DNA of 64,000 nt, taken from NCBI GenBank assembly GCA_002269645.1, contig NIVC01000052.1, positions 372,001 to 436,000 on the forward strand, given 5' to 3'. The translations under genes were made by a program, and so were the position numbers. Under the pieces are notes generated by a model, which saw only the letters and a list, made by a program, of their open reading frames with translations, was not told the origin of the DNA and ran no database searches. This DNA comes from Macrostomum lignano (taxonomy: Eukaryota). Shown piece by piece: positions 16,908 to 54,091 of the stretch; position 1 is the first letter of the stretch; each line of letters opens with the position of its first letter.

Positions 16908-18545
16908 GCGAGCTCCCCATTCGCCGGAGCCGCGTTCATTTGGCGATGGACCAACCTGCTTCTACAGCAGAAGCCAGGATGATGAAGAATCCATATTGAG
17001 CAACAAGACACACAGCTATAACTACGTCCAAAGCGCCAGCAAGCACGAGGCAGACGGCGGGTTTCACTGGTTCGCAGTGCAGCTGAATGAGCCAGTGCTC
17101 ATCAGATCTGTGACTGTGAAGGGCAGAGAGGGTGAGTCACTCACTCAAATGCGTGCTCCAAGTCTGCTGTCTCTGCTCACGGTGCTCTCGCATTCCAGAT
17201 CATGCATCGTGGGTCTTTGAAAGAGCCACAGGCATTGAGATCTGGACATCAGACAGCAGCAGTCAGCTGTTCTCTGCATGCTCAAGGAGCATGAGCAGCC
17301 AGTTTAAAGAGTCCCAACAGCACTGGAGACTGTGTGGCTTCATTCAGAGTAAAAGCTTACAGATTAGAGCTGGAGAGATCTTTACAGTGAGCTGTATTGC
17401 AGAGGTAACTCTTTGATCTATCGAAATATTTAAATCTAAGCATGATGTTCGGTTTCAGTCGCTTTAGTCTTGAGAAATCAAAACATTGACTTCAGTAGCA
17501 AACTGAAGCAGCCCTGAGTGAAAAAGTTACCTGTTTGTGCCATTCCCATCGTAGATCAGACACCTGCTGCTCCGCAAAGACGTATCCGCGATTCAATCGT
17601 CAAGCTATTTCGACTTCCTGAAGCATAGCAGATCTCAGGCTGCAGAGAATGCAACTAAGTTAGTCTGCTTCATGGTTTTGAAAATGGTCTGGTTGTTATT
17701 AGTCACAGTTCTATTGTACATTTCAGAGATTTCGAAGCCCCAAATGTTTCTAGAAGGATCCAACTTCACGGTGCGCTGTGTTCCCCACTGTCAGGGCTGC
17801 GGTCTGTCCGGAAATTGTAGCATCCCTCAGCTCTGCTTTCCATCTGGCAGCTGTGTAGTCGGTCAGCAGGTGCAAATTTTAAAGGCACGGCTTCTGCACT
17901 CTGGAAACTTCACCTGCAAACTAGGTCACGTTGTGAGGCCGTCACTGTTCTGCGTGAGTACGATTTGGGCAGGAACTTGTGCAATTATTTTGATATTCAA
18001 CTCGCGGATGTTATTTTAAACACTCGACAGGTCATTGTCGTTCATCAAGTGAACCATTTTTGGGGCAGTTTTCGCAGCGGTCCTTGTCGCTGTCGGATTC
18101 GTCCTTGGCTTCGTGGCTGCGACCATCATTGTGTGCGGGTTTTTCCGAGTAAGTCGTGCTCGGTGAGATCCCCGATTTTGTAAGAATCTTTCTGATTAAG
18201 AGTTTCAAGTTTTCTGCTATTATTGATAGTATTATTAATTATAATTATAATTATTCAAAAAAATTATTTCGATAGTTTTCGATAGAACCGACGAGCCGGG
18301 ACTTATATACGCTTGTGCGGCCCCAAAAATATCCCAAACTTTCTCAAGACATCTTGTTATCAGTAATATTCCGCAGGGTGCTGCGTGCTTATCTGTCATC
18401 TGAACAACCCCACGCTCTGCTTTGCACACTACTACTACTACTACTAAAGCCCGTTTTTATGCGTCTTATTATCGTTTTTATTCAGGTGTCCGCCTACTGG
18501 CGCAGTCCTGCTGGAGTTAACACAGTCAGGGTGATGAGTCGATAA
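16908..18545 (+). pseudogene. Lectin-Ig receptor copy A (frameshifted)
   Basis: Exons 16908-17131, 17199-17404, from 17555, Ig exon (~17727-17950), TM exon (~18031-18148, AVFAAVLVAVGFVLGFVAATIIVCGFFR). A ~19-nt deletion near 16945 and a +1 shift in exon 4 relative to paralogs. Confidence 0.75.
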
Positions 18546-18613
18546 AGCGCGACTGTGAAGTCTTTTATGCTGCTCAGCTTGTTCGAGCATACGAACGATC
18601 GATCACACAAACG

Positions 18614-19400
18614 AAAGGGGATGTGAACTTAAGCTCCAGAATGAAGCTCGAATGAGGCCAGCAGACCAAACCGACTGGAATCGATAACTTGTCGGCCCAG
18701 ATGACTAGAAACGCTGACACATCCCACCCGAGTCTATTCTACGGGGTCCTGTGGAAGATATGAGATAAATGGGGATTTAATGTGAACTTAAGGCTCTAGA
18801 GTTTATCTCAAGGAAGCGCAGTGTTATGCATCCCTTAAGCCATGTTAAGGATAGTGATTATTTTGGAAACCAAGAAGCGAGTCAATGGCCCTCACATTTC
18901 AGTTTTTGGTTTAGGCCGCGACTTTTTTACGGTCTAATTGCCTAAGACCATAAGGTGCCATCAGCGCCACTCGGGCTGGCGGGTGGGGAAGCGGTCGCCC
19001 CCCCTCCCCACCTTAGGAGGCGACCCGCAAAAATTGTTCGGGAGGACCAACCGAATTTTCGCAAAGAATCCAAGCCCGCTTTACTCCACCCTCCCTCTGC
19101 TAATCCAAGCAGTTGGATCCACTCCCTCTCCCTCAGAAAATCTTTATATTATGGTATTTTTCGACGACATTCTTATTTATAGTTTTGAAAACCGATTCGC
19201 AAGCATCAGAAGTGTGAGATCAATATTTATATGCGATTTTACCAAGAATATTTTTTTCTAATTTGCCTTAACGTTAGAACCTTGCAGAGATTTTTCCAGA
19301 CGGTTATAGTCATCTGGGCCGACAAGTTATCGATTCCAGTCGGTTTGGTCTGCTGGCCTCATTCGAGCTTCATTCTGGAGCTTAAGTTCACATCCCCTTT
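18614..19400. mobile_element. MITE-like element with perfect 94-bp TIRs
   Basis: 18614-18707 is the exact reverse complement of 19307-19400. Absent at the paralogous site near 34135-34165. Contains a GC-rich MITE-like fragment (~18960-19130). Confidence 0.85.
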
Positions 19401-21505
19401 GTGAACTCCGACAGTATAGGCTTTCGGTCTGGCTTCTGATTGAATTCTCGATAGAGGTTTGGAATTCTATATTACGCGCGTACATTTTCAATACCCCTTT
19501 TCTATGTAATCTAGTAATTCTATTTGTATCAAAGCACTAATAAAGTTCGTCTAGTACTGCTTTCCAAAACAGCTACATTGGCTGCTGGCTTTCTGTTATA
19601 ACCTAAACCTTTGGCGCTCTCGTAGTCTTTTCTGTGCGACTGTTGCTTTTTTAATCCTGAACTCACACAAGTACTCGCGGTCTCTTGAACGATTCAGTTT
19701 ATTCACTAACTACAAAATAAAAACAGTCTTCATTAACTAGACTCAATGAAGACCAAATTACTAAATAATTTTGTAAATGAATGCATCGTGAGCGAAGGTG
19801 AAAAATTCTAGAAGCGGAGTTGCATCTGAGGGATAGGTGTCATGGTTTCTGGTGGAAGTGGCAGCTATCAATTCGACACGTATTGATAATGTAGAGTACT
19901 GAATAAAGTTACAGAACAATAAGGACGCTCTCTTATTCCCTTCAGAATGAAAGTCTATCAACAAGCGGGGTGTCAAACAAGTTGCAGCTGTGAGCAATAG
20001 AATTCCATAGCATCCTTGCGAGACGATCTAGACAAAAAATATATCGCTAGGGATACATTTGGCTGCCTCGCAACAAGGACGTCACGGGGGCATTCCATAT
20101 AAATAATAGTACTGGCTTATGTACAGTATAACAACAAGATACACCTCGCCCAGCTTCTCGTGAGACAGAGTCCTACGGTGGCTATATTTAAGTGCAATTT
20201 CATCCCAGTTGCTTGAGCGAGTCAGAGCGGGTGTCTGTGCACTTTACATTTTCTGTACCACAGCCGGTAACAAAAATGAGGACAGATGCAGCAGCAGCAG
20301 CACTGGAGCTGATGGGGCACGGCAACAGGTGAGCTTCTCTGCATTGGCAGTTGGAGTGGCTGCAGGCAGGGATTGCAGAATGCGGTCAGCAGGATCTACA
20401 TTAAGCGCAGTGCACTGTTGAATCTTTCCTTAAATGAATGTTTTTCTACAAGCAACCTGCATGGTCTCTTTTTATCGTGGGTATCATTTTATCTATAAAG
20501 AAGAGACTATTGTGCTATTAACGTCCATGCGAGTCAAGTGTACATGCCTAACGATAAATAAAGTTAGGGTTGCTGTACACTCCTGTGCGAGTGTGTGCCT
20601 GTGCGTATGACTGCGTACGTATTCGCGCGCTTGTGTGCCTGCTCGGCAGAGTCGGCGGAATGGGCAGCAATGCCTCTCTCTGGCCGGTTGTGCGACAATG
20701 TCGCTTATGCGCCACGATGCAGACAGCGTCTGCTTCTTAATAAGAAGGCTCACGGGGGATTGCTTAGCTGCTGAGACTCAATCGGGAAGTTCCTGGTAGG
20801 CCAAACATCAAAGGGATGTTGCTGAGATGCCAACGGTCAAGAGGATCGGCTTGATGCCAAGGCTCGAAGGAAATGCTGATAGCTCGTATATCTTAGACTA
20901 AAAAGCTGGCTTTCAGGGCGGGTGCTTTTTGCTTTGGAAATCTTTTTCTTTAAGAAACTAACAATTGTGACTCTAGAGCGCTTTATGTACATAAAAGACT
21001 GCCAGATGCTGTGAACTAATAAGCAATTGCTACACCGATATGGCAATGCATCGATAAGCCGTCAGTTTTGTCATTCAAATTAAAAATGTCATTGGAATAT
21101 GAGGACAGAAACATGTCATAAGAGTAAACATAGCGAGTGTTGTCATAAATAACAAGGAGGCCAATTTACTGGCTTGTGAAACCATGCTTTGAACTTGAAA
21201 TAGCCGATTAAGGGCAATTTAGCTGAAGAGGAAATGCGTCATCCATTGCGCCTCAGCCACAACTCCTGTGTCTCTGAATACTATATGGAATAGCAATTGT
21301 AGTCTGGCTTGTTGGTGCCTTAGATGTGCACGTCTGGCTGGTTTGGGGGTTGGGTTTAGTGCTGCGGCGTGTGCGTGCTTAGGGTGGTTACACCCACCCC
21401 AACTTTGGCATTAAATATATTGGCGTGAGCCAGTGAGGTCTCCTCACGTTTTGTTATTCTCTGCAATTCAACCCACGGTCTTACACTGGTGGCAGCGGTC
21501 TCAGT

Positions 21506-22300
21506 ATGGCCAAATCAGAGCAAGCCAGTTTATTGCCTTCAAAGTTCAGCGGCGACTTCAACGTGAGAATGTGGCTAAGCACGTTTGAGGACTTCGCCGA
21601 CGACTGCGAATGGGACGACAAGAAGAAGGCAAAGAAGCTGAGACTGCTGGTGACAGGAGAAGCGCAAATCTTCGTCTGGGAGCAGCCGGCAGACGTGTCA
21701 GCCAGCTATGAAAGGCTGAAGGAGAAGCTGATCGAGTGCTTCGGCAACAGTCTGAGCTGCTACAGAGCAATGGAGGATTTTGTAGAGCGAAAGCGACAGC
21801 CCAACGAGTCGCTGAGGGAGCTCGCCTACAGCCTGAAGCTTCTCCACCTTCGGGCCCGCCCGGACGACTCCGTGGCGGCTCGGGAAAAGGACGTGAAGTT
21901 TCGCCTGATGCGCCTCCTGCCATCTGCCGTGAGAGATGCGCTGTTGAAGGACCAGGACGCGGACTCGTGTTCGCTGGCCGCCATCGTCGACAGAGCTGCG
22001 CAGCTTGAGCTGGTGAGCCACGCAACTACAGCCTCATCAGCCGCGGTGTCGGTAGAAGACAGACGGCTGAGCCAGCTGGAGCAGCAGGTGCAGCAGCTGA
22101 CAGCCAGCGTGCGAACGGGACCACCCGGAAGAGACAGGCGTCAGAAGGGACCCATTAAGTGCTTCAGCTGCGGCGAGCCGGGTCACATTGCTAGGCGGTG
22201 CCCAAAGGCGATCGGCAGCCGCTGCAGCCGGTGCTCAGGCAAGGGTCACTCCGCCGCGGTGTGCCCGACACCAACTGGTCAGCCGCAGGGAAACTTCTGA
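21506..22300 (+). CDS. gag: Gag with two CCHC zinc knuckles
   Basis: CFSCGEPGHIARRC and CSRCSGKGHSAAVC; ATG 20 nt after the 5' LTR. Confidence 0.93.
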   Translation: MAKSEQASLLPSKFSGDFNVRMWLSTFEDFADDCEWDDKKKAKKLRLLVTGEAQIFVWEQPADVSASYERLKEKLIECFGNSLSCYRAMEDFVERKRQPNESLRELAYSLKLLHLRARPDDSVAAREKDVKFRLMRLLPSAVRDALLKDQDADSCSLAAIVDRAAQLELVSHATTASSAAVSVEDRRLSQLEQQVQQLTASVRTGPPGRDRRQKGPIKCFSCGEPGHIARRCPKAIGSRCSRCSGKGHSAAVCPTPTGQPQGNF

Positions 22301-22330
22301 GGGTCGGCAGCCTGGGGCCAGCACCGACCC
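22288..22330 (+). promoter_or_regulatory. -1 programmed ribosomal frameshift signal
   Basis: Slippery G GGA AAC (22288-22294) in gag phase, 6-nt spacer, then stem GGGTCGG (22301-22307) / CCGACCC (22324-22330); pol is in the -1 frame. Confidence 0.8.
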
Positions 22331-25300
22331 GCTCAAAAGGGGCCCTCAGATCAGCGCCTTCAGTCTTCGTGAAGGTGCACTTTGGCAGCGTGTCAGCGCC
22401 TGCTCTGCTCGACACCGGCGCGCAAGTTTCGTTGATGGACAAGTCACTGTTCGACAGATTGCTGTGCAAGATCGACTCCACCGACATCGGTGCGCTGCCG
22501 ACGGCTGTCGATGGATCCCGGCTGCGCTGCCTTGGCCTGTCAGCAGCGGATGTTTCGATCGGCCAGACCATCCGCGTGCGCCATCGCTTCACAGTCGTGG
22601 ACGGCATCCAGCCCAGCCTGATCATCGGCATGGACTTCATTGGCGAGGTGTCGCAGGCGATGACCATTGACATTAAAGAAGGCGTCGTCAGGTTCGACGG
22701 CACAGCTGTGCCTTTTAGCAGCGAGCCGGCTCGAGCAGACTGTCGCCTGGTGCCGAGTGTCCTGGTGGCGCGTGTGGCGGCAACTACGGAGCTGCCCGCC
22801 CGCAGCGAGAAGCTGGTGTGGCTCAAGGTATATTCCAGCGGCGAGCAGGGAGTCTTTGAGCCGTCTGAGGACTTCGTGAAGTCCACTGCCGTCCTGCCGG
22901 CCCGCGTGCTGGCGGTCTCGGACGACTGCCGCATCCCGGTGAAAATGTGCAACCTGGCAGAGGAGCCCGTGTTGCTGTACGCCAACAAGGCGGCCGGCAC
23001 GTTCGAAGGCGCGATGACAGACGGGGACGGTCGCCAGGAGGCGGCCCAGGAGAACCCCGTCGGTTGGAACATCAACGCGGAGCTGCCCGAACCGGATGCT
23101 GCGAGGATGCGACAGCTGTTGGAGAGCAACGAGGACCTGTTCGCCAGGCACGAGTACGACCTGGGCACGACGGCGTTGCTGCAGCACCAGATCGAGCTGG
23201 AGCCGGGAGCGCGGCCACACCGGCAGGTCCAGCGCCGGCTGCCGCTGTCTGTGCGAGACCAGGTGGACAAGAAGATCGGTCAGATGCTGGAAAGCGGCAT
23301 CATCGAACCGTCGACATCGCTATGGGCCAGCAACCTGCTGGTGGTCCGCAAGAAGAACGGCGACATCAGACTGTGCACGGACTGGCGGCAGCTCAACGCC
23401 TGCACGGTCAAGGATGCGTACCCGCTGCCGCACCTGCAGCAGGCCATGGATGCGCTTGTCGGATGCTTCTGGTTCTCCACCATCGACTGCCGGCAGGGCT
23501 ACCACCAGGTGGAGGTGGCGGAGGAGGACCGGTACAAGACGGCTTTCTATTCGACGCGCGGCCTGATGCAATTCTGCAAGATGGGCTTCGGGATGTGCAA
23601 TGCCCCGGCGACGTTCCAGCGGCTCATGGAGCTGGTGATGTCCGGCCTGTCCTAGGAGTCCGTGCTGACTTATATCGACGACATCATTGTCTTCAGCAGG
23701 ACGTTCGACGAGCACTTAGAGAGGCTGGCGGAAGTTTTTAAGCGGTTGCGAGACGCGGGACTCAAGCTGCACAAGGCCAAGAGCGCGTTCGGCCATCGCC
23801 GGGTGCTGTACCTGGGACACCTGATCAGCGAGCAGGGCATCGCACCGGATCCCGGCAAGGTCGAGGCCATTCGCAGCATGCCCAGCCCAACGACGAACGA
23901 GGGGGTGAAGCGGTTTCTTGGAATGCTGGGTTTCTACCGCCGGTTCATCCCAGGCTTCAGCCAGACGGCGAGGGTCCTGCACGACGTCAGCGTGAAATCG
24001 AGGGACTTCGCGTGGAGCAGCGACTGCGAGCGAGCGTTCCGCGAGTTGAAGGACCGGCTGACGACAGCTCCGGTGCTGAGACTGCCAGATTTCACCAAGC
24101 AGTTCGTGCTCAGCTGCGACAGCAGTCAGTTCGCCGTCGGTGCGGTGCTCAGCCAGTTGCACGGTGACGCTGAGCTGCCTGTGGCGTTCGCCTCTCGCAC
24201 CCTCAACAAGGCCGAGCGCAACTACTCGGCGACCGACCGCGAGCTGCTGGCGCTTGTCTGGAGTTTGAAGCACTTCAGGACGTACCTGCTGAGTGTTCCG
24301 AGCTTCAGAGTCTACTCGGACCACCGGCCACTGCAAGGTCTGCTGGCAACGGACCCCGAAGGTCGGCTGGCGCGATGGCTTTCGACGCTGCAGCAGTTTT
24401 TGTTCGAGCTGCTGTACCGGCCTGGCAGGGACAACGTCGTGCCGGATGCGCTGAGCCGGGTGGCCGGCACGCGCCTGCAGCCTCGGTGGGACGACAGCCG
24501 CCTGCACGAGGAGCAACTGCAAGACCCGCTGCTGAGCAAGGCGTTCCAGGCGCTGACCGAAGGGATTGACAGCCTGTCCGATTCATGGGCGGCGCAGGTT
24601 CGCGAGCTGCTGGACGAGGCCTCGGTGAGCTCGGCGGGAGTCCTGCTGGTCGGTGGCCGGCCAGTCATTCCCGGTCACCTGCGGCCACATTTCCTGCAGC
24701 AGGCGCACTCGTGTGACCAGAGCGGACACCTCGGCGTCGACAGGACCGGAGCGAGATTGTCTGAGCGCTGCTGGTGGCCTGGTCTGCGACGGGACGTCGA
24801 GAACTGGGTGGCCAGCTGCGCGGTCTGCCTGGCCAAGAAGAGTCCAACCAAGCCGCAGAAGGCGCCGCTACAGTCGACGTGCCAGCCGACGGCTCCGTGG
24901 CAGCTGGTGCAGATCGACATCAAAGGGCCGCTTCCGCGTACGACTGATGGCAAGGCGTACATCCTGAGCATGTGCGACGCCTTTTCCAAGTGGATGGAGA
25001 CGGCAGCCCTGGCGGTGATCGACGCGGTTACGGTGGCGGATGCACTGCTCAAGTCGGTGGTTCTGCGTCACGGTGCTCCTCAGGTGCTGCACAGTGACCA
25101 GGGACGGCAATTGGAGAGCGAGGTGTTCGGCCGGCTCTGCGAGCAGCTGGGCGTCGAAAAGACGCGCACGTCGCCGTTTCATCCGAGCGGCAACGGAATC
25201 GTCGAGCGAGGCAACCGGACGCTCGGCGATATGCTGGCGACGACGGTGGCCGAGAACCAGCAGGATTGGGACAGCAAGCTGTCGTATGTAACCTGGGCCT

Positions 25301-26000
25301 ACAACACCTCCGTGCACAGCACCACCGGCCTCAGTCCGTACCAGGTCCTCCACGGCTGGCCACCGAGGCTGGATCTCGACAGCTGGCTGATAAGCGGCGA
25401 CCGGCCGGCAGCCGACGGTGGACATCACGGCTTCCTGCAGCGGACTCAGGAGAACCTGCAGAGCGCTTTCGACACGGTGCACGGCCGGCTGGGGAGCGCC
25501 CAGGTCGAGCGCAACCGCTGGCCAACCAGGACTCTCGGTTCGTACCGTTCGAAGAAGGCCAGCTCGTGATGCTGCGCAACTCCGTCGTCAAGCGCGGCCA
25601 GACGCGGTGCCTGAGCGCCAAGTGGAAGGGGCCGTACCGAGTCCTGAGGCGCCTGGGCGAGGTCAATTACCGCATCCAGGACGAGACCGGCCGCAGGCGC
25701 CGGCTGGGGGTGCACCATGACCGCCTCAAGCGCTTCGTGCAGCGGCGGGCGTCACTGGAGCTTCCGGCCGCAGCAGACCACCAGCCGCCGGCCGCCGACT
25801 TCGACAACGACGGCACCGTCGCTGAGCCGCCCGGGCAGGCGGCCGATCCTGGCGGCGACGCGGTGACCTTCTGGCCCGAGCTGCAGGCAGACGAGGCACC
25901 CGAGGAGCAGCCGGCGGCACCGGCCGAGCCGGTCACGGTTCCGCAGCGGTCGGCGAGAGAGCGGCGGCCACCTGACTTGTACATGGCGGGCTTTGCTTAA
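22288..26000 (+). pseudogene. pol: Pol (protease, RT, RNase H, integrase with GPY/F module), -1 frame from gag; two lesions
   Basis: LLDTGAQVS; YPLP, FSTIDCRQGYHQV, YIDDII; CDSSQFAVGAVL, RNYSATDRELL; H..GHLG...WWP...CAVC, IDIKGP, SDQG, GIVER; KWKGPY. In-frame TAG at 23653-23655 (Trp expected) and a 1-nt frameshift near 25518. Confidence 0.92.
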
Positions 26001-26282
26001 CTCTGGAACTGTCTTTTGCTTCTAGGGGGAAAGTAGTGTAGTCTGGCTTGTTGGTGCGCGTGCACTTAGATGTGCACGTCTGGCTGTTTTGGGGGTTGGG
26101 GTTTAGCGCTGCAGCGTGTGCGTGCTTAGGGTGGTTACACCCACCCCAACTTTGGCATTAAATATATTGGCGTGAGCCAGTAAGGTCTCCTCTCACGTTT
26201 TGTTATTCTCTGCAATTCAACCCACGGTCTTACACAATTATAAACCTTTAACTGTGTTGGTCATTCTTTGTCAGCACAATGT

Positions 26283-26826: not shown

Positions 26827-29800
26827 TCAGCCAATGTAAATTTCAGCTGCATTCTCCAGCTTGTACTCAGAGTTCTCATACTCTGTTGCCGCATCCTGAG
26901 GTCTCCCAGCAGCTGATCCTCCGCCTCGGCTCAACTGAAAGCGAAGTTTGCTGCGGATTATCCTTACGCGAATAGTACGAGGGCTGTCCCAAAAGTAGTG
27001 TTAGTTTTCATTACGTCTTTCATTCTGATGATCCAAATAAAACCATTTTGCACCATTTTATAATGGCAACTCTCTTCTTCATGTGTAAGATATATCGTGG
27101 TTTCAGGTCGGTATTTGTTTAAATGAAATTAATGAAATATTAATGAAATGGTTAACTTAATGCCGAACAAGTTTAGACCATAGACAAAGCCACAAAACAA
27201 AACAAGCTTAGGGTTATAGAGGACTGGACTCAACAATAAATTAAGTTTCAGTCGGGTGTAAAAGTGTCAGCGAGCAAAGTAGCGTAGGAGGCTTGTCTGT
27301 TAATCATTGATGATGACAGTTGCAGTCCTTGAACTTAAAGTTCACGGTAGTCTGGCCCGTCTATAGTCTATTGCTTATAGCCAAGGCCTCTCACTGGCAG
27401 CGTATTAAGAATTCTAAGAGCATCGGAGCCATAGACGAAAATGGAATTCAAACTGGATGGGGGTATGGGTTCCGGGATTTATTCGAAAACATCCCCTCCC
27501 TGAGCAACAATTAAATTACATCCATGATTTTTGGCGCAGCAAAATGAAGGAAAAAGCAATGAAGCTTAAGCCGAGTGGGAAATATTCTGCTGCTTTAAAA
27601 TTTTTATGGTTCTCAAAGTTTTTCCATAGATGTCTCTTTGTCAAAGCAGCCTAAAAAAGAAGTCTGAGTGGCATTCAATCAAAAGTACTTTAGCTACTTT
27701 CCACTAGCTTGTTGACCTGTGGTCGAGTTTGTGCTGCATTTTGTTCATAACTTTTGTTTCCATTGTTTTTAAAGCTGTTAAAGTTAATATGAAGAGAGTT
27801 GCCGCTATAAAATTGTGCAAAATGATGTTTTTTAGATCACTACTTTTGGCCTTGTAATAATTGATTAAACCTGCCCCAATTGGCAGATGTGCAACCGACA
27901 GCTCAGCCGCAGCTATTGCGCGGCGCATCTGAAGGCTGCGTACGGCTGTTCAGTCCAAGGACTGGAGGGTCGCCACAGACACTCTCAATTACCCCAGCTA
28001 ATGCTGGCGCCCATTTTACAGCTGGGTGAACTGCAGCACTGCAGAGTTAGGCGTTTTGCTCAAGAACACTAATTGTTTCTTGTTGGTTGAGAATCGAACC
28101 CCTGACCTTCAAGTCGTGAGTCCGACACTCTGACCTCTACAACCACCTTGTAGCCGACGCTTACGCGAAAAGCGAAACAGTGACAAAAATAAGCATCAAG
28201 TCTGCATCAAGCAGCCACTCACCATTTCAGTTTGCTCTGCAGTGCCTTGCATCTGTTGAGCAGGTGTCGCCTGACAACGGACACCTGTTAACTACAATTA
28301 TATAATAATCAAGTACTTTTCGTAAACATTTTCTATGTGATGCCAGGTGATTTCAGAGTTGGTAATTCACAAACAGATCTCACTCGGAACAAAGCGCAAA
28401 GGAGGCTGGATGCAGCAAAGCCGATCCCAAAGAAAGCAGCTGCACAGGCTGCGTGCCCTTTTGCGCCGAGTTCACTCAGCTTTCCTGGGCAGCTCAGTCG
28501 AGCTCTGGCGCTGTGGACTTGCCTGAACTCGATTCCTTCCGGGAGAGTCTGCACCGCACTGCAGGTGACCAGAGCACGGCCCAGCCTTTCATCAGTGTCC
28601 AGTTTCCATTGGCTGACTGAGCCATCCCTGCTCGAGCTCTGCTCGACCAGTGTCAGGCGAGTGAGATTTCCTATGAGCAATTCATCGGATTCAGCGCTGC
28701 ATCTGTGCTCAGGCAGCGGCTTAGAGACAGAGGATGAGAATATAACGATTATGTCAGACAGTCTCTGACAATTGTCGGACTTCAGCACTGAGATTAACAC
28801 GGTTGACGGCGGGTCTGTAAGATGGGGATCAGTGGACTAGCTTATCTATGCTCTGGTTTAGGAAAACCCACATAAAATATGTCCTTCAATAACAGATGAT
28901 TAATAACATTAACAGGAAAAATTTCACTTCTTCCAAAAGTTGTTATCTTCCTCATCCAAACTACGGTGACTTGCAAGTCTGAGTTGAGACAGGTGCAAAA
29001 CCTCATCAACTTATTTGAAGGTAAACCCTTCGTAATTTTCTAAATACCGGAATTTGCCATTTTACAATTTACATAATCCTTAAAAGTGATTTTGCTGTTC
29101 CTATAAAGAAATGCAAATGGTTCTGCAGAACCTCGAGCTCACACAGCACAGCTACTGTCGTGCGCATCTCCACAGAGCCCAGTCTGCAGGTGTAGCTTCC
29201 AGCGTGCTGAGGCTGCGCTCTGGGAACCCGCAGCTCCTGTGATGCAGTGCAGCTGCCGTTCGGAAAGCAGAGCTGCTGCTGCACATTGGATGGCGTGAAA
29301 GTCGGCTTGCCTCCACACATCTGAGTGCAGCTGACAATGAAGCTGGAGTTCTCAGCCAGAGCACCAGGTCCTGACAGCTCTGCAATGCAGATCAGTTTCA
29401 TTGGGTTCGCATAGATGATTCAAATCAGTTTTGTTGCTTCTACGGGTAACAGGTGCAAATTTTATTAAATAAATCGAATATTTTCCCTCACTCAGCTGCA
29501 CTGCTTGAAGCCTCAGGTCAGTAAAGCTCAAGAAGTCATGGTAACTCGAGCTGTTTGCTGCAGCAACGTTTTTACGGAGCAGCAGGTGCCTCATCTAGAA
29601 TTCATTTTATCACAGATCATCATTCAGATGTTAAAGTTTCAATGCAACAAAAGGCGTAGATAAAAATGATTATAATAACTTCTCACCTCTGCAACGCAGT
29701 TCACTGTGAAGTTCTCTCCAGCTATGATTTGTGAATTGTTGCTCTCCGTGACCCCACACAGTCTCCAGTGCTGCTGGGACTCTCTGAACTGGCTGCTCAT

Positions 29801-31040: not shown

Positions 31041-31309
31041 CTGGAATGCGAGAGCACCGTGAGCAGAGACAGCAGACTTGGAGCACGCATTTGAGTGAGT
31101 GACTCACCCTCTCTGCCCTTCACAGTCACAGATCTGATGAGCACTGGCTCATTCAGCTGCACTGCGAACCAGTGAAACCCGCCGTCTGCCTCGTGCTTGC
31201 CAGCGCTGTGGAAGAACCGGTAGTTGAGGGTTTTGTTTTTTATCATGAATTCCTCATCGCGGTGGCTTCTGTTGTAAAAGCAAGTCCGGCCGTCACCAAA
31301 GGACGACTG
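31041..31309 (-). pseudogene. Orphan lectin exon-2 fragment plus 67-nt intron (copy H)
   Basis: KNKTLNYRFFHSAGKHEADGGFHWFAVQLNEPVLIRSVTVKGRE; 5'-truncated; no exon 3. Confidence 0.85.
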
Positions 31310-42615: not shown

Positions 42616-43469
42616 TATGACTGCGTACGTATCCGCGCGCTTGTGTGCCTGCTCAGAGGAGTCGGTGGAATGGGCAGTGATGCCTCTCGCCGGTTGTGCT
42701 ACAATGTCGCTTAAAATGCGCCAGGGTGCACGCTGCAACCCTTGAGCATTGACTTCAAGCTCACTGCACCGCAGAGCTGATCATAAACCCCATCGAGCAT
42801 GTCTGGAACTTCCTCAAGCGCAGCATACTCGTACAAAGAGAAAATCCACCGCAGAATGTTGTGCAGCTGCGCCAGGCCATTGCAGATACTTGGCAGAACC
42901 TTTCCCAGAACTTTCTGCGCCGCCTCATCTTGGAGATGCCGCGTAGAGTCGCCACACTGCTTCGTGTACGGGGATACCTCACGTGTTATTAAGCATTGCA
43001 ATTTCTTCTTCTTATGCAATACATAATTAACATGCAATATTGTTTGAATATTGCTTGAGAATCGATGCACACCTCAATCAAAATAATTAATAAGCAAACA
43101 CACTCGTAAACTGCTGAACTGCTGAAGTTGTCTTTGACTGACGCACGATATGCTTGCGGGTTTCCGAGTATCAGTGAGCTTAGTGCGGAAGAGCTCTGCA
43201 ATTTCTGACAGGAAGATTAATGGGATAAAGGCGGTGACTGGAAGTTACCTAAAAGAGTCGCACAAGGAGTTCATGCCTCAAAAAGCGCGACTTGGATGAA
43301 AGCATGGACTTCATCTCGGCTGGCTGGAAATCTATCTATAAGCAATATCCGATCGTCAGCACCAATGCATGAGCAATTTGCGCGCAATTAAAGATCACTG
43401 GAATTCACGCAGACTGTGAGTCTGTACTTAATCCCTAATGAGTTCACTTCTCAGCACTACAATAATGTT

Positions 43470-43830
43470 GCGCTTCATCGCTGCTACCTCTGCAGCGTTC
43501 TTTTGCGCGAGTTTCCTGAGATCCAGTGAGCTCATGAGCCTCAGCTATACATCGGCTTGGCTTCGGCTTGGTTTGGCTTCGGGTTGCAGGAGTCAGCCCG
43601 GCAGAGCAGCTGCTGTCAGAGACTCAGAGGCTCGCCATCCAGGAATCGAGAGGTGACCAGCAAGTCGACACGGAATTTTGCTTCAAAGGACTCTGATCTT
43701 AACTCAGACAGTTTAGAGTCATTCTGTAGAGCGTATCACTTCATTTTGAAGCTGCAGAGAATGAGAACTCTGAATATGAGCCGGAGAATGCAACTGAAGT
43801 TTACGTTAGTTGGACAGTTGAAAGTAAGCT
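43470..43830 (+). pseudogene. Receptor relic G (TM end plus degenerate YENS-type tail exon)
   Basis: Resembles 33520-33830 (CTTCATCGCTGCTACC..., ATGAGAACTCTGAATATGAGCCGGAGAATGCA). Confidence 0.6.
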
Positions 43831-44937: not shown

Positions 44938-47900
44938 ATGCAAATGCCGATGTGGCTGCTGCTGCTGCTGCTGCTGCTGGCCTCATCAGTGAGCACCAGC
45001 ATCCGAGGAGACTGTGAGTGCGTTTTCACCAAATCAACAATTATAAATGAATAGCACGGAATTAAATTGAGCTGACTGCTCAGCCTGTGCTCACCATTGC
45101 AGGCGAGTTCCCGATTCGCCAGAGCCGCGTCCTGAGCTCCTGGCAGTCGTCCTTTGATGACGGCCCGACTTGCTTTTACAACAGAAGTCGCGCTGATGAG
45201 GAATCCGTGCTCAAAAACAAAACCTTTAGCTACCGGTTCTTCCACAGCAAAGACAAGAGCTCAGCAGACGGCGGGTTTCACTGGTTTGCAGTGCAGCTGA
45301 ATGAGCCAGTGCTCATCAGATCTGTGACTGTGAAGGGCAGAGAGGGTGAGTCACTCACTCAAATGCGGGCTCAAAGTCTGCTTCCTCTGCTCACGGTGCT
45401 CTCGCATTCCAGATCATGCATCGTGGGTCTTTGAAAGAGCCAGAGGCGTTGAGATCTGGACATCAGACAGCAGCAGCCAGCTGTTCTCAGGAGATCACTG
45501 CAGCTCAAGGAGCATGAGCAGCCAGTTCAATCAGTCCCAGCAGCACTGGAGACTGTGTGGGGTCACGGAGAGCAACAATTCACAAATCATAGCTGGAGAG
45601 ATCTTCACAGTGAACTGCGTTGCAGAGGTAAGATTACAGATAGAGATGTGTACAAAAAGTTGAAAAGCTGAGGGCGTGATCAACTCAAGTAATTAATGAT
45701 CATGCAATGCATGGAGGAGGAACTCTCTTGACCTTAAATCCATTTCGATACTTATAAATCTGTTTGACACATCTTTCTAAGTCTATTTCAACAAAATTGA
45801 TATGCAATTCAGACAGTTCTCGTTTCACTCTCAATTGTCTCTTAAGACAAATTCATATTAATCAGTCATCATCTTATTTAGATAAGTTTTATTCAGTCAT
45901 TTGGGCGACACTTTCCAATCTTTCCAATCTTTCTATTCGATGCTGGCATGCCTAAACAGACGCATAGAAATAATTTTCTAAAATGATATTACGAAATTGC
46001 ATAATGAGATATCTGAATCACAGAATTTACAAAACACACAGTATATTCTGTGGTCTGAATTGCATATCGGTTTTGTTGAATTAGACAGGGAAAATGTGAT
46101 AACTCATAACGTATTTTGTTTTATCATTCGATTCTCTCAACTTTAGACAAGGCAGCTGCTGCTCAGAAGAAACATTACGTCAGCCGATGCATCGAGCTAT
46201 CACGATTACATGAGCTTTGCAGATCTCAGGCTTCAAACATTTCAGCTGGGTGAGTCCGCAACTCTGATATGTAATTCTGCAGATTGTGGATACTGTCGAA
46301 ACATGAATTAATGCAAAAAGCCCATCAAGATGATGCTCTTTGAAAATCCACTTTGGAAATTTACAGAGGCCTCAAAAGCTGAGTTGGTGGCGGAGAACTC
46401 CAGCTTCTCAGTGAGCTGCGCACTGCGATGCAGCGGCCCACCGGACGCAACTTCAAGGGATCTGCAGCTCTGCTCTCCGAACGGCAGCTGCACTGCATCA
46501 CAGGAGCTGCGGGTTCCCAGAGCGCAGCCTCAGCACTCTGGAAACTACACATGCAGACTGGGCTCTGTGGAAAAGCGCACTGGCGTGGCTGTGCTGTGTT
46601 AGTGGCAATACTTTGTTCGGCTTCATTTTAAATATACTTTCGGGCTTTCTCAAATGATAGAAATATTATTAAATGCTCGCATGGTCGAAACACAGAAAAT
46701 TATTCTCTTTGTAAATCTTGCTGCATCACTTAACATGCATTTTTTATCAAGCTAGCATTTTCAGAAGCGGTCAAGGAATATTGTGCTAAACTCGATCTCT
46801 CCAGCGCCCTCAGGCCCACAAGTGGTGGCGGAGAACTCCAGCTTCTCAGTGAGCTGCTCGCTGCACTGCAGCGGCTCAGATCTGTGCTCAAATTCAAGCA
46901 CACTGCAGTTCTGCTTGCCGAACGGCAGCTGCACAGGCAGCCACAGGATGGCCGTTGCAGTGGCGCAGCCTCAGCACTCTGGAAGCTACACCTGCAGACT
47001 GGGCTCTGTGGCGACTCGGACTTCCGTCACCGTACTGTGTGAGCTCTTGAAACTTTATATTTTGATGTGCACAAGCGACTAATGCTTTGAAACTTCTGAA
47101 AATGCTTCCAGTGAAAAGAAGTTTATTCTAAATATTAGAACTAGAATCATGAACGAGTAGGCACACGAGTCACAACGTGGCGCACGTTTCGCACCTGGAA
47201 ATGAATGCTCTGTACATTATTTTTGTCTGACTTACGCTCGAATTCATTCCTAATTGACTTATTACACGCTTTTGTTTTCGAAAGCCCAGCTGAACAAATG
47301 AATTTGCTTCATTGGTTGAGTAACAAAAATTACCTGCCTCTTTCTCATTCAGCATCCTCTCAGCCCCAGATCGTGGCGCAGAACTCCAGCTTCTCAGTGA
47401 GCTGCTCGCTGCACTGCAACTGCTCAGATCTGTGCTCAAACTCAAGCGGACTGCAGCTCTGCTTGCCGAACGGCAGCTGCACAGGCAGCCACAAGATGGC
47501 CGTTGCAGTGGCGCAGCCTCAGCACTCTGGAAACTACACCTGCAGACTGGGCTCTGTGGAGTCTCTGACTTCAGTCACCGTGCTGTGTGAGTGGGCGAAC
47601 TACTTTGATTTGCATGTACACTCTTCTATAGATGGTTTAACTGAGAAACCTAATCGAGCACTGACTGCATCGCTGCAGACCCGCCATCGAAGGTGTACAT
47701 AACATTTCTGAATCAGGGTAGCTGCGTCAGCCCATCGGATGTGACAGTGCAGTTCGCTTCCTCTGCGTCTCATCCGCGTGTTGAGCACAAATGCAGCGCC
47801 GCTGACGCCAGGGGTGTCTCACTGCTCAATATGACACGCCTGTCTTTGGTGAGTTGCAGTTTGAGAAGATATGAGTCAAGATTGGCTGACTGAATCATAT

Positions 47901-49294
47901 GACGCGATGCGCATTGCAGAGCTCGGGTGGAGATGGCTCCGTCAGCCAGTGGAAACTGGACAGCGATGGAGAACAGAGTCTGGGACTGAAAGTCCGCATC
48001 AACTGTAGCGCACTGCAGAAGCTTCCAAAAAAAATCAGCTTCCAAGCCGCCAACCTCCAGGACTCAGCTGAGCTGACCTGCCCAATGCTTGCCACCATCC
48101 AATCTCTCACTGGTGTCCTCGCAGCATCCGCCATCTGTAGCGCCGGTCTGGTCTTCCTCAGTGCAACCATCGCAGCTCTGGTAAATGATAAGCCTCTCCT
48201 TGAGTCAGTTCTCGTCACAGACACACACTAGTTAACTTACTAGATTGCTTGAAAAAACATGAAACACCTAAATACAGCGCGTGTGCATGGCGAGCAAGAG
48301 ATAAGAGGAATGGTGTCCCTGCCCCCAGCCAGGCCGATAAACAGTTAGGCGCTATGTCTAACCTTAACCTCTCTCCTTACTGCTCTCTCATTGGCTGAGC
48401 TAGATTGGGCCTGCCCCCTAGGCTGAGTTCGTCCGTCTAACTTTCACCTCTCTCCTTACTGCTCTCTCATTGGCTGAGCTAGATTGGGCCTACCCCCTAG
48501 GCTGAGTTTCGTCCGTCTAACTGTAACCTCTCTCCTTACTGCTCTCTCATTGGCTGAGCTAGATTGGGCCTACCCCCCTAGGCTGAGTTTCGTCCGTCTA
48601 ACTTTAACCTCTCTCCTTACTGCTCTCTCATTGGCTGAGCTAGATTGGACCTACCCCCCCCCCCTATGCTGAGTTTCCGTCCGTCTTGCATTTACTGTGT
48701 ACATGGAGTTAAACATTATCAACTCCATTATGCTGGTGAGGTCGGAAACCTCGAGGACGGAGAGGAAATTTTATCTGCGACAGAAAATTTAAGTGACACT
48801 GCGCAAAACAACTACTGAAAGAGTCGACGCTATATATATATTTTTTGCGAGTGGCATATCTATTTTTATATCTGCAGTTCTCGTGTACTAATTGCACAAT
48901 GCCCTGCGTTTCAGCGCAAGGCTCGGTCCAGCCACCTGCCAGCAGCCCCGCTAAACGTCAACTCAACTTGCATCGTGGACTCGGAGCTGCAAGCGGTTGC
49001 TGAAGAAGCTCCCGTACAAGGCGGGGTGAGTCTCTGCTAATGGGATAGCCATTGCTTTTTGGAATGCAAAAGACAGCGGGTCATTTGGCTTCGGTAGCGG
49101 CTGTCGGGTGCTGCTTAGATGTCAAGCAGATGGAGCCGCCTGCCCACCTCACCCGATTCCAGGCAGTCGGCAGCAGTGAACCGGAGTGCAGCTACCTCAC
49201 TGTGGCCGCCGCTGCACCCGCTGGTCAGGCTAAGCTGCGCGACTCCGACAGCGAATGCACCGAGTTCATCGAGATGGTGGCTGACGGCGACTGA
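44938..49294 (+). CDS. Lectin-Ig receptor copy F1 (intact): SP, F-type-lectin-like, 3x Ig, Ig-like, TM, SYLTV tail
   Basis: Exons 44938-45013, 45103-45345, 45413-45627, 46147-46249, 46367-46597, 46805-47038, 47353-47586, 47679-47848, 47920-48180, 48915-49025, 49163-49294; GT-AG, phase-compatible, open. Ig motif HSG[NS]YTC three times. Confidence 0.85.
48356..48685 (+). repeat. ~80-bp tandem repeat x4 (intronic), two ATTGG/CCAAT boxes per unit
   Basis: Unit GTCTAACTTTAACCTCTCTCCTTACTGCTCTCTCATTGGCTGAGCTAGATTGGGCCTACCCCCTAGGCTGAGTTTCGTCC. Confidence 0.9.
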
Positions 49295-50401: not shown

Positions 50402-50855
50402 TTAAGATTATCATTATCATTATGATGTTTAAGAAAACTTTGAAATAATTTTCACGTTCAAGCTTTTGTTTATCAAAGCGTCAAAAAAAATTCAATCATG
50501 AATTCTGTCAGATTCGTCGCACAAAGTCTTCGACATCCGTGAATTTGGTTTTTGTTAATAAATTAGTGTCTATTTTTACTTGTCAACCACAGTAAGCTGC
50601 GCCGAATGCATCCAAATTAGTGAATTTTTAGAACGGAGGCGCTGTCCAATTTCTGACTGGAACAAACACTTATTAACCTCAGTTAAACTGGTTGCAATTG
50701 CAAGTGGTGAATGAGTTTAAGATTCCTGCAGGGTATTCTTGGCAGCTTTAAACAAAAGATCGCTAATTTAAGTTTTTTTTCGACCATTTTCCGAATACGT
50801 CGCCGCCAACAAGACACTTCAGAAGAGAATAAAATCTTGAAGAAAGTACTTGTCA

Positions 50856-53800
50856 ATGAGATCCTGGCTCCGTTTGATGTCGCTGCTGCTAGCATCGGTG
50901 AGCGCTACAGTCTACGGAGACTGTAAGTCTGTGCTTGCTACTGAATCTCATGCTATGCTAAAACAAATTACCAATTTGTGCTTGACTTCCTGTGCTCACC
51001 ATTGCAGGTGAGTTCCCGATTCGACGGAGCCGCGTCCTGAGCACCTGGCAGTCGTCCTTTGATGACGGCCCGACTTGCTTTTACAACAGAAGTCGCGCTG
51101 ATGAGGAATCCGTGCTCAAAGACAAAACCTTTAGCTACCGGTTCTTCCACAGCAAAGGCCAGAGCTCAGCAGACGGCGGGTTTCACTGGTTTTCAGTGCA
51201 GCTGAATGAGCCAGTGCTCATCAGATCTGTGACTGTGAAGGGCAGAGAGGGTGAGTCACTCACTCAAATGCGTGCTCAGAGTCTGCTGTCTCTGCTCATG
51301 GTGGTCTCGCATTCCAGATGACAAATCGCATGTCTTTGATAGAGCCAGAGGCATTGAGATCTGGACATCAGACAGCAGCAGTCAGCTGTTCTCAGGAGAT
51401 CACTGCAGCTCAAGGAGCATGAGCAGCCAGTTCAGAGAGTCCCAGCAGCACTGGAGACTGTGTGGGGTCACAGAGAGCAACAATTCACAGATCATAGCTG
51501 GGGAGATCTTCACAGTGAACTGCGTTGCAGGGGTGAGATTACAGATCGAGATATGTTTACAATAAAATCTAAAAAATCGGAGGGCGTGATTAACTCCAAA
51601 TTATATGAACTCTCTTGACCTGAAATACATTTCGATACTCCCAAATCTGTCTGATAAAGTGGTGGCATCTCGTAACGCATTTATGTTTTATCATTTGATT
51701 CTCTCAACTTTAGACAAGGCAGCTGCTGCTCAGAAGAAACATTACGTCAGCCGATGCATCGAGCTCTCACGATTACATGAGCTTTGCAGATTTTAGGCTT
51801 CAAACATTTCAGCTGGGTGAGTCCTTCATCTTCAGATTGAGGATAGTGTCGAAATATGAAGATAAATGCTTTAAATTTCATCAAGAAGAAGCTCTTAATA
51901 AGCCATGTTAACAAATTACAGAAGCCTCAAAAGCTCAGTTGGTGGCGGAGAACTCCAACTTCTCAGTGAGCTGCGCACTGCGATGCAGCGGCCCACCGGA
52001 CGCCACGTCAAGGGATCTGCAGCTCTGCTCTCCGAACGGCAGCTGCACTGCATCACAGGAGTTGCGGATTGCCAGAGCGCAGCCTCAGCACTCTGGAAGC
52101 TACACCTGCAGACTGGGCTCTGTGGCGACTCGGACTTCGGTCACCGTGCTGTGTGAGTTCTTTTAACTTTACATTTTGATGCAGTATGTCAACAATGTCA
52201 TTAATTAGCAGGAGTAGACGGAATAAGTTTTTTTTTCAATAAAATTCGAATTTGCTGTTCAGTTAGAAATAATCTTTGCAGACCCGCCGTCGAACGTGTC
52301 AGTCCCAGTGCTGCACTGTCAGAGTCAGTCAGTTGGGATGGTGCAGTTCGCATCGTCGGCATCTGAGCCGGCGCCTGAGCACAGATGCAGCGCTGAGTCT
52401 GTTGGTGGAATGACAGCGCAGAATCTTACTTTTCAGTCACTGGTATGTTTCCTGTATGCTCTGCTCTGATAGATCCTGTGTTTTTGGAGAATCACAATAC
52501 AGTATGCCGATGCGGCATTGCAGAACTCAAACGGGAGCGGCTCCTTTAGTCAGTGGAAGCTGGACATTGGCCGGGACTGGCCCAATGGCGGGACTGTACT
52601 CATCAACTGCAGTGCTCTGCTGCTAAATAATCTCAGCTTCCACTTGTTCCAGTCGAGCATTGTACAACTCAACTGCTCAACGTCTAGGACCATCGCAGCC
52701 CCGATCCTCTTCAGTGTCGGACTGACCCTCTTGGCTGTTGCAATAACTGCTTTGGCCGTGTTGGTGAGTCAGGAAGTAAAAACACTGTTTTGGCGCTAGT
52801 ATATTTCACAATAAGTGACAACTCCTGGAACAGCTTCAGCGCAGGGCTTGTCCGTCAAGAGATGAGCCACCAGCAACCGGATTTAGTCCAAACTCGGACT
52901 GCATCGTCGCCTCCGACACTCGAATAGTTGCTCCAGTGGAACGAGAGACTCCTGTGAGTCTGGCTTGTAATAATAATTATTACTATTAGCTCGCCAAAAA
53001 CCCTCAATTACCCCAGCTAATGCTGGCACCCATTTTACAGCTGGGTGAACTGAAGCGATGCAGAGTTGAGTGTCTTGCTCAAGAACGCAAACTGTTCCAA
53101 GTGGGTCGAGATTCGAACCCCCGACCTTTCATTAGAGTGGGTGCCATCTCATTAGAGTGGGTGCCATCTCATTAGAGTGGGTGCCATTTCATTAGAGTGG
53201 GTGCCATCTCATTGTAGTGGGTGCCATCTCATTGTAGTGGGTGCCATCTCATTGGAGTGGGTGCCATCTCATTGGAGTGGGTGCCATCTCATTAGAGTGG
53301 GTGCCATTTCATTAGAGTGGGTGCCATCTCATTAGAGTGGGTGCCATCTCATTAGAGTGGGTGCCATCTCATTGGAGTGGGTGCCATCTCATTAGAGTGG
53401 GTGCCATCTCATTAGAGTGGGTGCCATCTCATTAGAGTGGATGCCATCTCATTAGAGTGGGTGCCATCTCATTAGAGTGGATGCCATCTCATTAGAGTGG
53501 GTGCCATCTCATTAGAGTGGGTGCCATCTCATTAGAGTGGGTGCCATCTCATTGGAGTGGGTGCCTCTCATTGGAGTGGGTGCCTCTCATTAGAGTGGGT
53601 GCCATCTCACTGGAGTGGGTGCCATCTGACTGGAGTGGGTGCCATCTGACTGGAGTGGGTGCCATCTCATTGGAGTGGGTGCCATCTCATTGGAGTGGGT
53701 GCCATCTCACTGGAGTGGGTGCCATCTCACTGGAGTGGGTGCCATCTCATTGGAGTGGGTGCCATCTCACTGGAGTGGGTGCCTCTCATTGTAGTGGGTG

Positions 53801-54091
53801 CCATCTCATTGGAGTGGGTGCCATCTCACTGGAGTGGGTGCCATCTCATTGGAGTGGGTGCCATCTCACTGGAGTGGATGCCATCTCACTGGAGTGGGTG
53901 CCATCTCACTGGAGTGGGTGCCATCTCACTGGAGTGGGTGCCACCTCACCCGATTCCAGGCAGTCGGCAGCAGCGAGCCGGAGTGCAGCTACCTCACTGT
54001 GGCCGCCGCTGCACCCGCTGGTGAGGCCGAGCTGCTGGACTCCGACAGCGAATGCACCGAGTTCATCGAGATTGTGGCTGACGGTGACTGA
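50856..54091 (+). CDS. Lectin-Ig receptor copy F2 (intact): SP, F-type-lectin-like, 1x Ig, Ig-like, TM, SYLTV tail
   Basis: Exons 50856-50922, 51008-51250, 51318-51532, 51714-51816, 51922-52152, 52282-52442, 52524-52763, 52834-52953, 53960-54091; GT-AG, phase-compatible, open. TM PILFSVGLTLLAVAITALAVL. Confidence 0.85.
53128..53945 (+). repeat. Minisatellite, 20-bp unit ATTAGAGTGGGTGCCATCTC
   Basis: About 40 units in the last F2 intron, abutting a SINE fragment (52975-53127). Confidence 0.97.

Follow-up and report, generated by a model that had tools for sequence, protein, structure and literature searches.

The forward strand of contig NIVC01000052.1 (GenBank assembly GCA_002269645.1) of the flatworm Macrostomum lignano was analyzed from position 372,001 to 436,000, a stretch of 64,000 nucleotides (nt) hereafter called the window. 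The window contains nine related loci within about 37 kb, of which four are intact and five are decayed. The four intact genes, hereafter g2, g5, g8 and g9, are predicted to encode type-I membrane glycoproteins. In every intact protein the order of modules is a signal peptide, a head of about 187 amino acids (aa), one to three immunoglobulin (Ig) domains, a membrane-proximal domain modelled as a beta-sandwich (the M domain), a transmembrane segment and a cytoplasmic tail with tyrosines. We consider it moderately probable, from the sequences and the structural models, that these proteins are cell-surface receptors or adhesion molecules whose head would bind a ligand that varies little, most likely a glycan, and whose tails would recruit phosphotyrosine-binding or endocytic machinery.

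The first gene model was built by hand from the sequence, and its exon types were then used as tblastn queries against the window. Family exons were confined to positions 16936-54088 (E-values to 1e-53), and the nine loci were delimited by tblastn together with hand splicing. The four intact genes spliced into uninterrupted open reading frames (ORFs) of 490-669 aa over 8-11 exons, with AG/GT at each junction (exon coordinates are given in Table 1). The original prediction, made from the sequence alone, had proposed about nine loci with four complete ORFs between 16908 and 54091. This count was reproduced, and these limits correspond to the first exon of locus 1 and the stop codon of g9. The modules that it had listed were likewise all present: a signal peptide, a three-exon head, phase-1 Ig exons without the core tryptophan, a C2-like domain with a YPPS motif, a transmembrane segment and a tyrosine tail. 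Public M. lignano gene models share several splice junctions with the hand-built models. The public model P0002 matches g5 exactly over 280 aa spanning the Ig, M, transmembrane and tail exons and skips the second and third head exons; P0007 is identical to g8 at 182 of 183 aa over the second and third head exons and the first Ig exon, and P0012 shares 72 identical aa with g2. Each intact protein has a single transmembrane segment (Kyte-Doolittle 19-mer above 2.0), located by hydropathy at residues 410-434 in g2, and carries 8-18 N-glycosylation sequons and 14-27 ectodomain cysteines.

The head is encoded by three exons of 243, 215 and 103 nt (L1, L2 and L3). Its structure was modelled with AlphaFold2 on a database paralogue, P0001, with family members and translated window exons as the rows of the alignment. 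The model was mostly beta (pLDDT 79.4, pTM 0.82). The top Foldseek matches in the PDB were the F-type lectins MsaFBP32 (3cqo_A, E 8.7e-5) and Anguilla agglutinin (AAA; 1k12, E 9.8e-5), with TM-scores of 0.50-0.58 and 16-17% identity. The F-type lectin domain (FTLD) of lectinolysin also ranked high, and CBM32, the EndoS2 CBM, muskelin and discoidin domains came close behind; the lead of the F-type lectins over the CBM32 and discoidin folds was small. Because Foldseek ranks F-type lectins and then CBM32 and discoidin folds, the head is modelled as a galactose-binding-domain-like jelly roll for which F-type lectins are marginally the best match. A galactose-binding-like fold had been expected in the original prediction, and on this point the structural and profile comparisons agree with it.

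Profile comparison placed the head nearest to the same family. The F-type lectin profile contained the AAA sequence, which was checked against 1k12_A (100% identity), and three more solved FTLDs. Alignment of the family profile to this profile with hhalign gave a probability of 83.8% (E 7.9e-6), and 83-85% over 136-146 collinear columns when the spliced full-length heads and distant paralogues were added; taken overall, the comparisons with the four solved FTLDs gave 83.8-84.8%, E-values of 1e-6 to 8e-6 and 73-146 collinear columns. The two families are collinear from an N-terminal xxQSS strand to a C-terminal L.L.E/D.x.V strand, and the F-type lectin pattern WWRVDL...SVTITNRxD...ER..GAEI corresponds to HWFAVQL...SVTVKGRED...ER.RGIEI in the flatworm proteins. 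R79, D81 and R86 of AAA align to the invariant family R (GRE), D and R (ER.RG), with a 3-residue insertion between the D and the last R. A control alignment to the five discoidin repeats of the protein P0025 reached only 35%. Discoidin (F5/8 type C) was rejected as the closest family because it ranked below the FTLD in this control (35% versus 84%). The discoidin receptors DDR1/2, neuropilins and CASPR resemble the flatworm family in carrying a galactose-binding-like jelly roll of the F5/8 type C kind, N-terminally or in the ectodomain, on a type-I membrane protein; beyond the weaker profile match they differ in their kinase, CUB or laminin G domains, which the flatworm family lacks.

The head also differs from F-type lectins in size, at about 187 aa compared with a domain of about 140 aa, and in anchorage, F-type lectins being secreted or composed of tandem FTLDs and the flatworm proteins being held at the membrane on an Ig stalk. 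An invariant, family-specific segment, SGDHCSSRSMSSQF (g8 residues ~129-142, window 45490-45535), constitutes a 16-aa insertion relative to F-type lectin domains. Its conservation exceeds that of most of the head fold, and it may contribute to a binding site that has been rebuilt.

The Ig exons measure 231-240 nt, are phase 1-1, and encode the pattern H[AS]G[SN]Y[TI]C and extra cysteines in the absence of the core tryptophan. A VSC...YTC pattern is present in all Ig copies, and in g8 the Pfam family Ig_2 was matched in three stretches with 36.7 bits (cut-off 27). As the original prediction had noted, the number of Ig exons varies, from one to three in the window and from zero to three across the family. 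The M domain, which carries YPPS...PEH.C, was modelled alone on that of P0002; the AlphaFold2 model had seven strands (pLDDT 79.7), and its Foldseek matches were only weakly Ig-like (E-values of at least 6e-3, TM-scores 0.4-0.55) and included nanobodies, SYG-2 D4, RAGE and CopC. Pfam gave no match for the M domain besides an odd one to ZU5 on g8 residues 386-453 (window ~47390-47720; 24.7 bits, cut-off 21), in the third Ig and the first M exon. This match was judged probably spurious because ZU5 is a cytoplasmic domain and the matched region is extracellular. A phase-0 intron interrupts the M domain in g8 and g9, and the domain is a single exon in g2 and g5. In the latter two genes nine in-frame bases on the minus strand, GTCGAGCAG (V-E-Q), stand in place of the intron (g2, 28620-28660; g5, 36365-36400). 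These bases begin with GT and end with AG, and for this reason look like the remnant of an almost wholly deleted intron that is now exonised and translated.

Two types of cytoplasmic tail were found, holding one or three tyrosines. Tail A, (D/E)YENSEYKLENA..Y(I/V), occurs in g2 and g5; its last 17 aa are close to identical even in proteins with different juxtamembrane segments. Tail B, EPECSYLTV...SECTEFIEIVADGD, with an acidic C-terminus, occurs in g8 and g9. The motifs of tail A are YENS, YKLE and a terminal Y(I/V)x, and those of tail B are CSYLTV, with Cys at position -2, and CTEFIEI, in which Phe replaces Tyr. YENS resembles a pYxN site and YLTV resembles a YxxPhi site. The sequence TVYLEI, which fits TxYxx(V/I), is present only in the family members P0004 and P0005.

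Several observations weigh against the reading of these proteins as glycan-binding surface receptors. Transcript support for g2, g5, g8 and g9 is indirect and consists of public gene predictions only. The structural models derive from shallow alignments (9-19 rows), with TM-scores of only about 0.5. Pfam scores on the head were below threshold, at 16.2 bits for F5_F8_type_C_2 (PF22633, cut-off 27.8) and 14.5 bits for F5_F8_type_C (PF00754, cut-off 28.2), although such sub-threshold scores (14-17 bits) recur at the same position in several distant paralogues, and neither the whole protein nor the head profile gave a usable match in HMMER searches of PDB sequences. F-type lectins are characterized by the fucose motif HX24RXDX4(R/K), which contains the His52/Arg79/Arg86 triad, the calcium motif h2DGx and a Cys82-Cys83 bridge (PMC5712786). 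The flatworm family has H-X31-R-E-D-X7-R instead of the fucose motif. His52 of AAA aligns to a Ser and the invariant family His aligns to His47 of AAA, in a low-confidence stretch of the alignment. The segment aligned to the calcium motif is ESVLkNK, an invariant ADGG being present elsewhere in the head, between the His and the HWFAVQL strand, and the aligned RED....ER segment is free of cysteine, so that the vicinal pair is absent as well. By inspection, the tails match neither the canonical immunoreceptor tyrosine-based activation motif (ITAM), YxxL/I-x6-12-YxxL/I, nor the inhibitory motif (ITIM), (I/V/L/S)xYxx(L/V/I). Because the canonical sugar and calcium motifs are missing, sugar binding may have been lost or altered, as proposed for Drosophila Furrowed.

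The original prediction had called the head an F-type lectin and the tail a signalling tail. For the head, the fold and the best matches stand, and the three sequence motifs and the Pfam cut-offs fail. Given that combination the head is F-lectin-like, probably a very divergent branch of the F-type fold, and not a proven F-type lectin; sugar binding by it is plausible. As for the tail, its tyrosines are conserved, yet the claim of signalling finds no canonical ITAM or ITIM to rest on.

Ratios of non-synonymous to synonymous substitution rates (dN/dS) were calculated among the four intact genes by the Nei-Gojobori method. They were 0.29-0.62 for the head and 0.28-0.56 for the M domain, and 0.34-1.18 for pairs of Ig exons, with only 3-17 synonymous differences per pair. 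The head is the best-conserved module, with 84-87% aa identity among the window genes and many positions invariant throughout the family, and by this measure it is shown to be under purifying selection. The variability in loops that the original prediction had described was found insofar as head substitutions cluster in a few segments that align to loops around the F-type lectin site; no hypervariable region was evident in the head. Diversifying selection is not shown by this pattern, because loops vary in any protein and because such a hypervariable region is lacking.

The head and the 3' modules of these genes have discordant histories. Synonymous divergence (dS) between g8 and g9 is 0.074 in the head and 1.46 in the M domain, and between g2 and g5 it is 0.226 in the head and 0.085 in the M domain. 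The nt identity of g5 to g2 is 92%. The head exons and intron of g2 are 95.6% identical to those of g8 at the nt level, in its signal-peptide exon and 5' flank it shares 94-97% identity with g9, and its 3' half is g5-like with tail A, g8 and g9 carrying tail B. Because of this discordance within gene pairs, the cluster is an exon-level mosaic, putatively formed by gene conversion or unequal recombination, in which one head is found on two types of 3' half. The tail swapping that the original prediction had proposed is seen in the same way, as tails A and B on similar heads. The mosaicism suggests gene conversion and a design like that of paired receptors.

The head profile was scored without a word filter against 1.84 billion (1.84e9) representative proteins. 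At E <= 1e-3 there were 22 matches. The source names returned for matches, complemented by a cluster look-up for ten of the 22, assigned all but four to M. lignano. The four others were P0018, from a metagenome; P0025, a distantly matching collagen protein that carries five true F5/8 type C domains; and the repeat proteins P0016 and P0024, whose origin was not looked up. P0018 lies on a 1.6-kb contig (L003, JGI metagenome 3300040801, 284-919) and is a distant copy with one uninterrupted ORF. Searching with the profile of the M domain brought in a single further protein, also from M. lignano, a restriction equal to that of the head. In present databases the family is essentially confined to M. 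lignano. Its distinct protein records number about two dozen, and many are fragmentary. The distant M. lignano paralogues P0019/P0027, P0020/P0030 and P0023/P0026 retain the signal peptide, head, Ig-like region and transmembrane segment, and an Ig domain is missing from P0004 and P0005. On contig NIVC01002544.1 at 89160-111382 (L001 2086-21032) there is a second cluster with a head-exon fragment, P0004, a gene with three Ig exons and tail B, and a gene with two Ig exons; this cluster may be a homeologous copy in a partly duplicated genome. UniProt names attached to family fragments (P0005-P0013, P0020-P0028) conflict with one another, being Ricin B-type lectin, CUB, MATH, fibrinogen C-terminal, Sushi, Pep_M12B_propep and coatomer zeta; these names were set aside, no such domain having been found in Pfam scans of P0001, P0004, P0018-P0020, P0023, P0026, P0027 and P0030.

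The searchable literature on Macrostomum lectins, Ig proteins and immune receptors held no description of the family or of its gene identifiers. Reviews of F-type lectins (including PMC5712786) list as partner domains CTLD, HTLD, pentraxin, CCP, FA58C and TM, and Ig is not listed. The combination of the head with an Ig stalk, a transmembrane segment and a tyrosine tail is new in that it falls outside these listed architectures, in agreement with the original prediction that it was undescribed.

The following model would accommodate these observations. The proteins would form a Macrostomum-restricted tandem multigene family of type-I membrane glycoproteins, displaying from the outside inward the F-type-lectin-like jelly roll, zero to three tryptophan-less Ig domains with extra disulfides, the Ig-like sandwich, the membrane span and tail A or B. 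At the cell surface the head would recognize a conserved and not a highly variable ligand, most likely a glycan. Its reach would be set by the Ig stalk, and through the conserved tyrosine motifs binding would be coupled to endocytosis or phosphotyrosine signalling. The cluster would have grown by tandem gene duplication and by duplication of the symmetric phase-1 Ig exons, with gene conversion or recombination keeping the 5' head exons alike on unrelated 3' halves, and with pseudogenisation and transposon insertion also shaping it.

Other explanations fit parts of the data. The proteins could be adhesion or developmental surface molecules whose head no longer binds sugar and makes protein-protein contacts, as may be the case for Furrowed (CG9095; an FTLD, a C-type lectin domain (CTLD), CCP repeats and a transmembrane segment). 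Furrowed is also a type-I membrane protein with a degenerate FTLD, in which the canonical fucose triad is partly lost and which is held off the membrane by small disulfide-bonded modules, and the flatworm head likewise falls outside the sequence definition of the F-type lectin family. Its stalk is CCP/Sushi rather than Ig and it has a CTLD in addition, whereas Pfam scans of g8 and eight relatives gave no CTLD or Sushi match; furthermore it is a conserved single gene and not a lineage-specific tandem family. Loss of the fucose-binding His, the calcium motif and the vicinal cysteines is consistent with a non-sugar role, adhesion molecules typically have an Ig-like stalk, and the strong conservation of the head, including the invariant insertion, would fit a fixed endogenous partner. 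Against this, both arginines and the acidic residue in the segment for sugar binding are invariant, core adhesion molecules do not usually expand in tandem within one lineage and leave many pseudogenes, and the head-profile search gave no orthologues in other flatworms. A role in adhesion or development without sugar binding appears unlikely. Rather improbable is the proposal of the original prediction, a diversified system of innate immune or allorecognition receptors for diverse non-self glycans, comparable to FREPs or VCBPs and under diversifying selection. Tandem clusters with birth-and-death, a lectin-like head combined with Ig superfamily (IgSF) domains, variable Ig number with two tail types, head substitutions at the putative site loops and dN/dS values of 0.8-1.2 in some Ig-exon pairs are all expected of such a system. 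Against it stands the head, the most conserved module of the proteins, in which no hypervariable region is seen. The few Ig pairs near 1 involve very few sites, with just 3-15 synonymous differences behind them; the family has few members, and its tails lack a canonical motif for immune signalling. Snail FREPs, CREPs and GREPs and amphioxus VCBPs are highly diverse, mostly secreted proteins with N-terminal IgSF domains and C-terminal lectin domains of fibrinogen, C-type, galectin or chitin-binding fold. The flatworm family shares with them the union of IgSF and lectin-type domains in a multigene invertebrate family, and differs in its reversed order, its transmembrane segment, its conserved head and the absence of their lectin domains from the Pfam results.

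The cluster also invites comparison with CD33-related Siglecs and paired receptors (Siglec-5/14, Siglec-11/16 and KIR), whose layout and evolution are similar. Siglecs and paired receptors have an N-terminal glycan-binding head, variable Ig spacers, a transmembrane segment and alternative tyrosine-motif tails, and Siglec/KIR-type clusters are tandem, contain pseudogenes and have had their head exons homogenised across genes whose tails differ. By analogy, a near-identical converted head on tail A or tail B genes could recognize the same ligand and elicit opposing or different responses, as a lineage-specific innate recognition system; we regard this as quite doubtful. Siglec heads are V-set Ig domains and not jelly rolls, canonical ITIM and ITAM motifs are absent from the flatworm tails, and there is no homology beyond generic Ig. 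A role in gamete or partner recognition, evolving fast in a sexually selected hermaphrodite in the manner of oyster bindin, itself an F-type lectin, is very unlikely. Restriction to a single lineage, rapid copy turnover and mosaic evolution would agree with it, as would the function of F-type lectins in bivalve fertilisation (PMC5712786), but the proteins are membrane-anchored with cytoplasmic tyrosine motifs and not secreted acrosomal proteins, and the head is under purifying selection. Least credible of all is that the region is a non-functional, decaying repeat array whose ORFs arose by chance or through annotation artefacts. Five of the nine loci are indeed broken, repeats and transposons abound in the region, and the public models of the window genes are fragmentary. 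Such an array would not be expected to keep four ORFs of this length open through canonical splice sites, or dN/dS clearly below 1 in the head and M domains, and relatives are annotated by NCBI in the Mlig_3_7 assembly, an annotation that we take to be transcript-based. Receptors or adhesion molecules with a conserved, probably glycan ligand remain our preferred interpretation.

The five decayed loci (Table 1) represent various stages of loss. The birth-and-death evolution claimed in the original prediction is seen in these copies beside the four intact ones and in the insertion of a Ty3/gypsy retrotransposon next to locus 1. Neither an M domain nor a tail was found in locus 1 by tblastn and three-frame reading. 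Locus 4 has an intact counterpart, at 93-94% nt identity, in the gene with two Ig exons of the second cluster (NIVC01002544.1, L001 18711-21032). The 3' part of locus 6 is 97.8% identical to locus 4, and the GC-rich insert that directly follows its g8-like signal-peptide exon may disrupt a former full gene. The retrotransposon has long open gag and pol ORFs with zf-CCHC, aspartyl protease, RVT_1, RT_RNaseH and rve domains (Pfam), is bounded by 104-nt direct repeats that are 94% alike, and has a GC content of 63-66% against about 45% around it. It is outside the family and part of the history of the locus.

The window as a whole is repeat-rich, with about 45% GC, and the cluster is flanked by conserved housekeeping genes. 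Minisatellites are unusually dense, with periods of 19-81 nt and up to 111 copies, and their translation produces spurious long ORFs. Several of them sit within introns of g8, g9 and the tubulin cofactor D (TBCD) gene; the last intron of g9 contains one of 41 copies of a 20-nt unit. At the left end of the window two 806-nt direct repeats, 99.9% identical and 6.2 kb apart, enclose an AT-rich interior (30-38% GC) without a long ORF. They are probably the long terminal repeats (LTRs) of a recent non-autonomous element, the left copy of which may be cut by the window edge.

Table 1 Features of the M. lignano window (window coordinates; SP, signal peptide exon; L1-L3, head exons; M, M-domain exon; TM, transmembrane segment).
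Feature	Position	Strand	Description
g2	26827-30363	-	Intact, 8 exons, 490 aa, one Ig exon, tail A; SP 30297-30363; L1 29969-30211; L2 29687-29901; L3 29492-29594; Ig 29143-29379; M+TM single exon 28384-28814; tail 28223-28291, 26827-26934 (stop included)
g5	35562-38294	-	Intact, 8 exons, 492 aa, one Ig exon, tail A; SP 38222-38294; head 37898-38140, 37616-37830, 37421-37523; Ig 37067-37306; M+TM 36128-36558; tail 35978-36043, 35562-35669
g8	44938-49294	+	Intact, 11 exons, 669 aa, three Ig exons, tail B; SP 44938-45013; L1 45103-45345; L2 45413-45627; L3 46147-46249; Ig1 46367-46597; Ig2 46805-47038; Ig3 47353-47586; M1 47679-47848; M2+TM 47920-48180; tail 48915-49025, 49163-49294
g9	50856-54091	+	Intact, 9 exons, 501 aa, one Ig exon, tail B; SP 50856-50922; head 51008-51250, 51318-51532, 51714-51816; Ig 51922-52152; M1 52282-52442; M2+TM 52524-52763; tail 52840-52953, 53960-54091
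Locus 1	16908-18180	+	Pseudogene or decaying copy (tblastn, three-frame reading); L1 16908-17130, frameshift, FFHS histidine lost; L2 17198-17404; degenerate L3 17558-17620; Ig 17726-17932; TM-like exon ~18060-18180
Locus 3	31109-31339	-	Lone L1 exon remnant with in-frame stops (tblastn)
Locus 4	31966-33819	+	Pseudogene (tblastn); L1 frameshifted, half of L2 left, no M domain; L3 32549-32647 and Ig 32729-32956 intact; second Ig 33188-33322 frameshifted; TM exon and tail A 33673-33819
Locus 6	38651-39868	+	Fragment; g8-like SP exon 38651-38719; GC-rich insert with 46-nt tandem repeats 38720-39150; partial Ig; TM exon; tail A 39722-39868
Locus 7	43438-43810	+	Degenerate TM and tail A remnant (..ENENSEYEPENATEVYV) (tblastn)
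Ty3/gypsy LTR retrotransposon	21342-26192	+	Between locus 1 and g2 (Pfam)
RNF113/CWC24-like ORF	15050-15622	+	CCCH+RING
TBCD exons	57950-63664	-	Tubulin cofactor D
806-nt direct repeats	1-805; 6203-7008
Minisatellites	13094-14039; 15705-16156; 48356-48658; 53129-53948; 54706-56817; 57381-58016; 59332-59731; 60536-60844; 62665-63103

The surface recognition receptors of M. lignano, a laboratory model in the study of regeneration, stem cells and sexual selection, are almost entirely uncharted. The family described here provides candidate lineage-specific surface lectin-like receptors, and adds to the group with an extended F-type lectin fold a divergent branch not picked up by current Pfam models. 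Glycan binding by the head with a partial canonical triad, if demonstrated, would inform how an F-type binding site can be rebuilt. The occurrence of the same head on two tail types offers a testable hypothesis for the origin of alternative-output receptor families outside vertebrates; should the paired-receptor reading be true, the cluster would be a convergent analogue of the activating and inhibitory pairs of Siglecs and KIR, built on a non-Ig lectin head.

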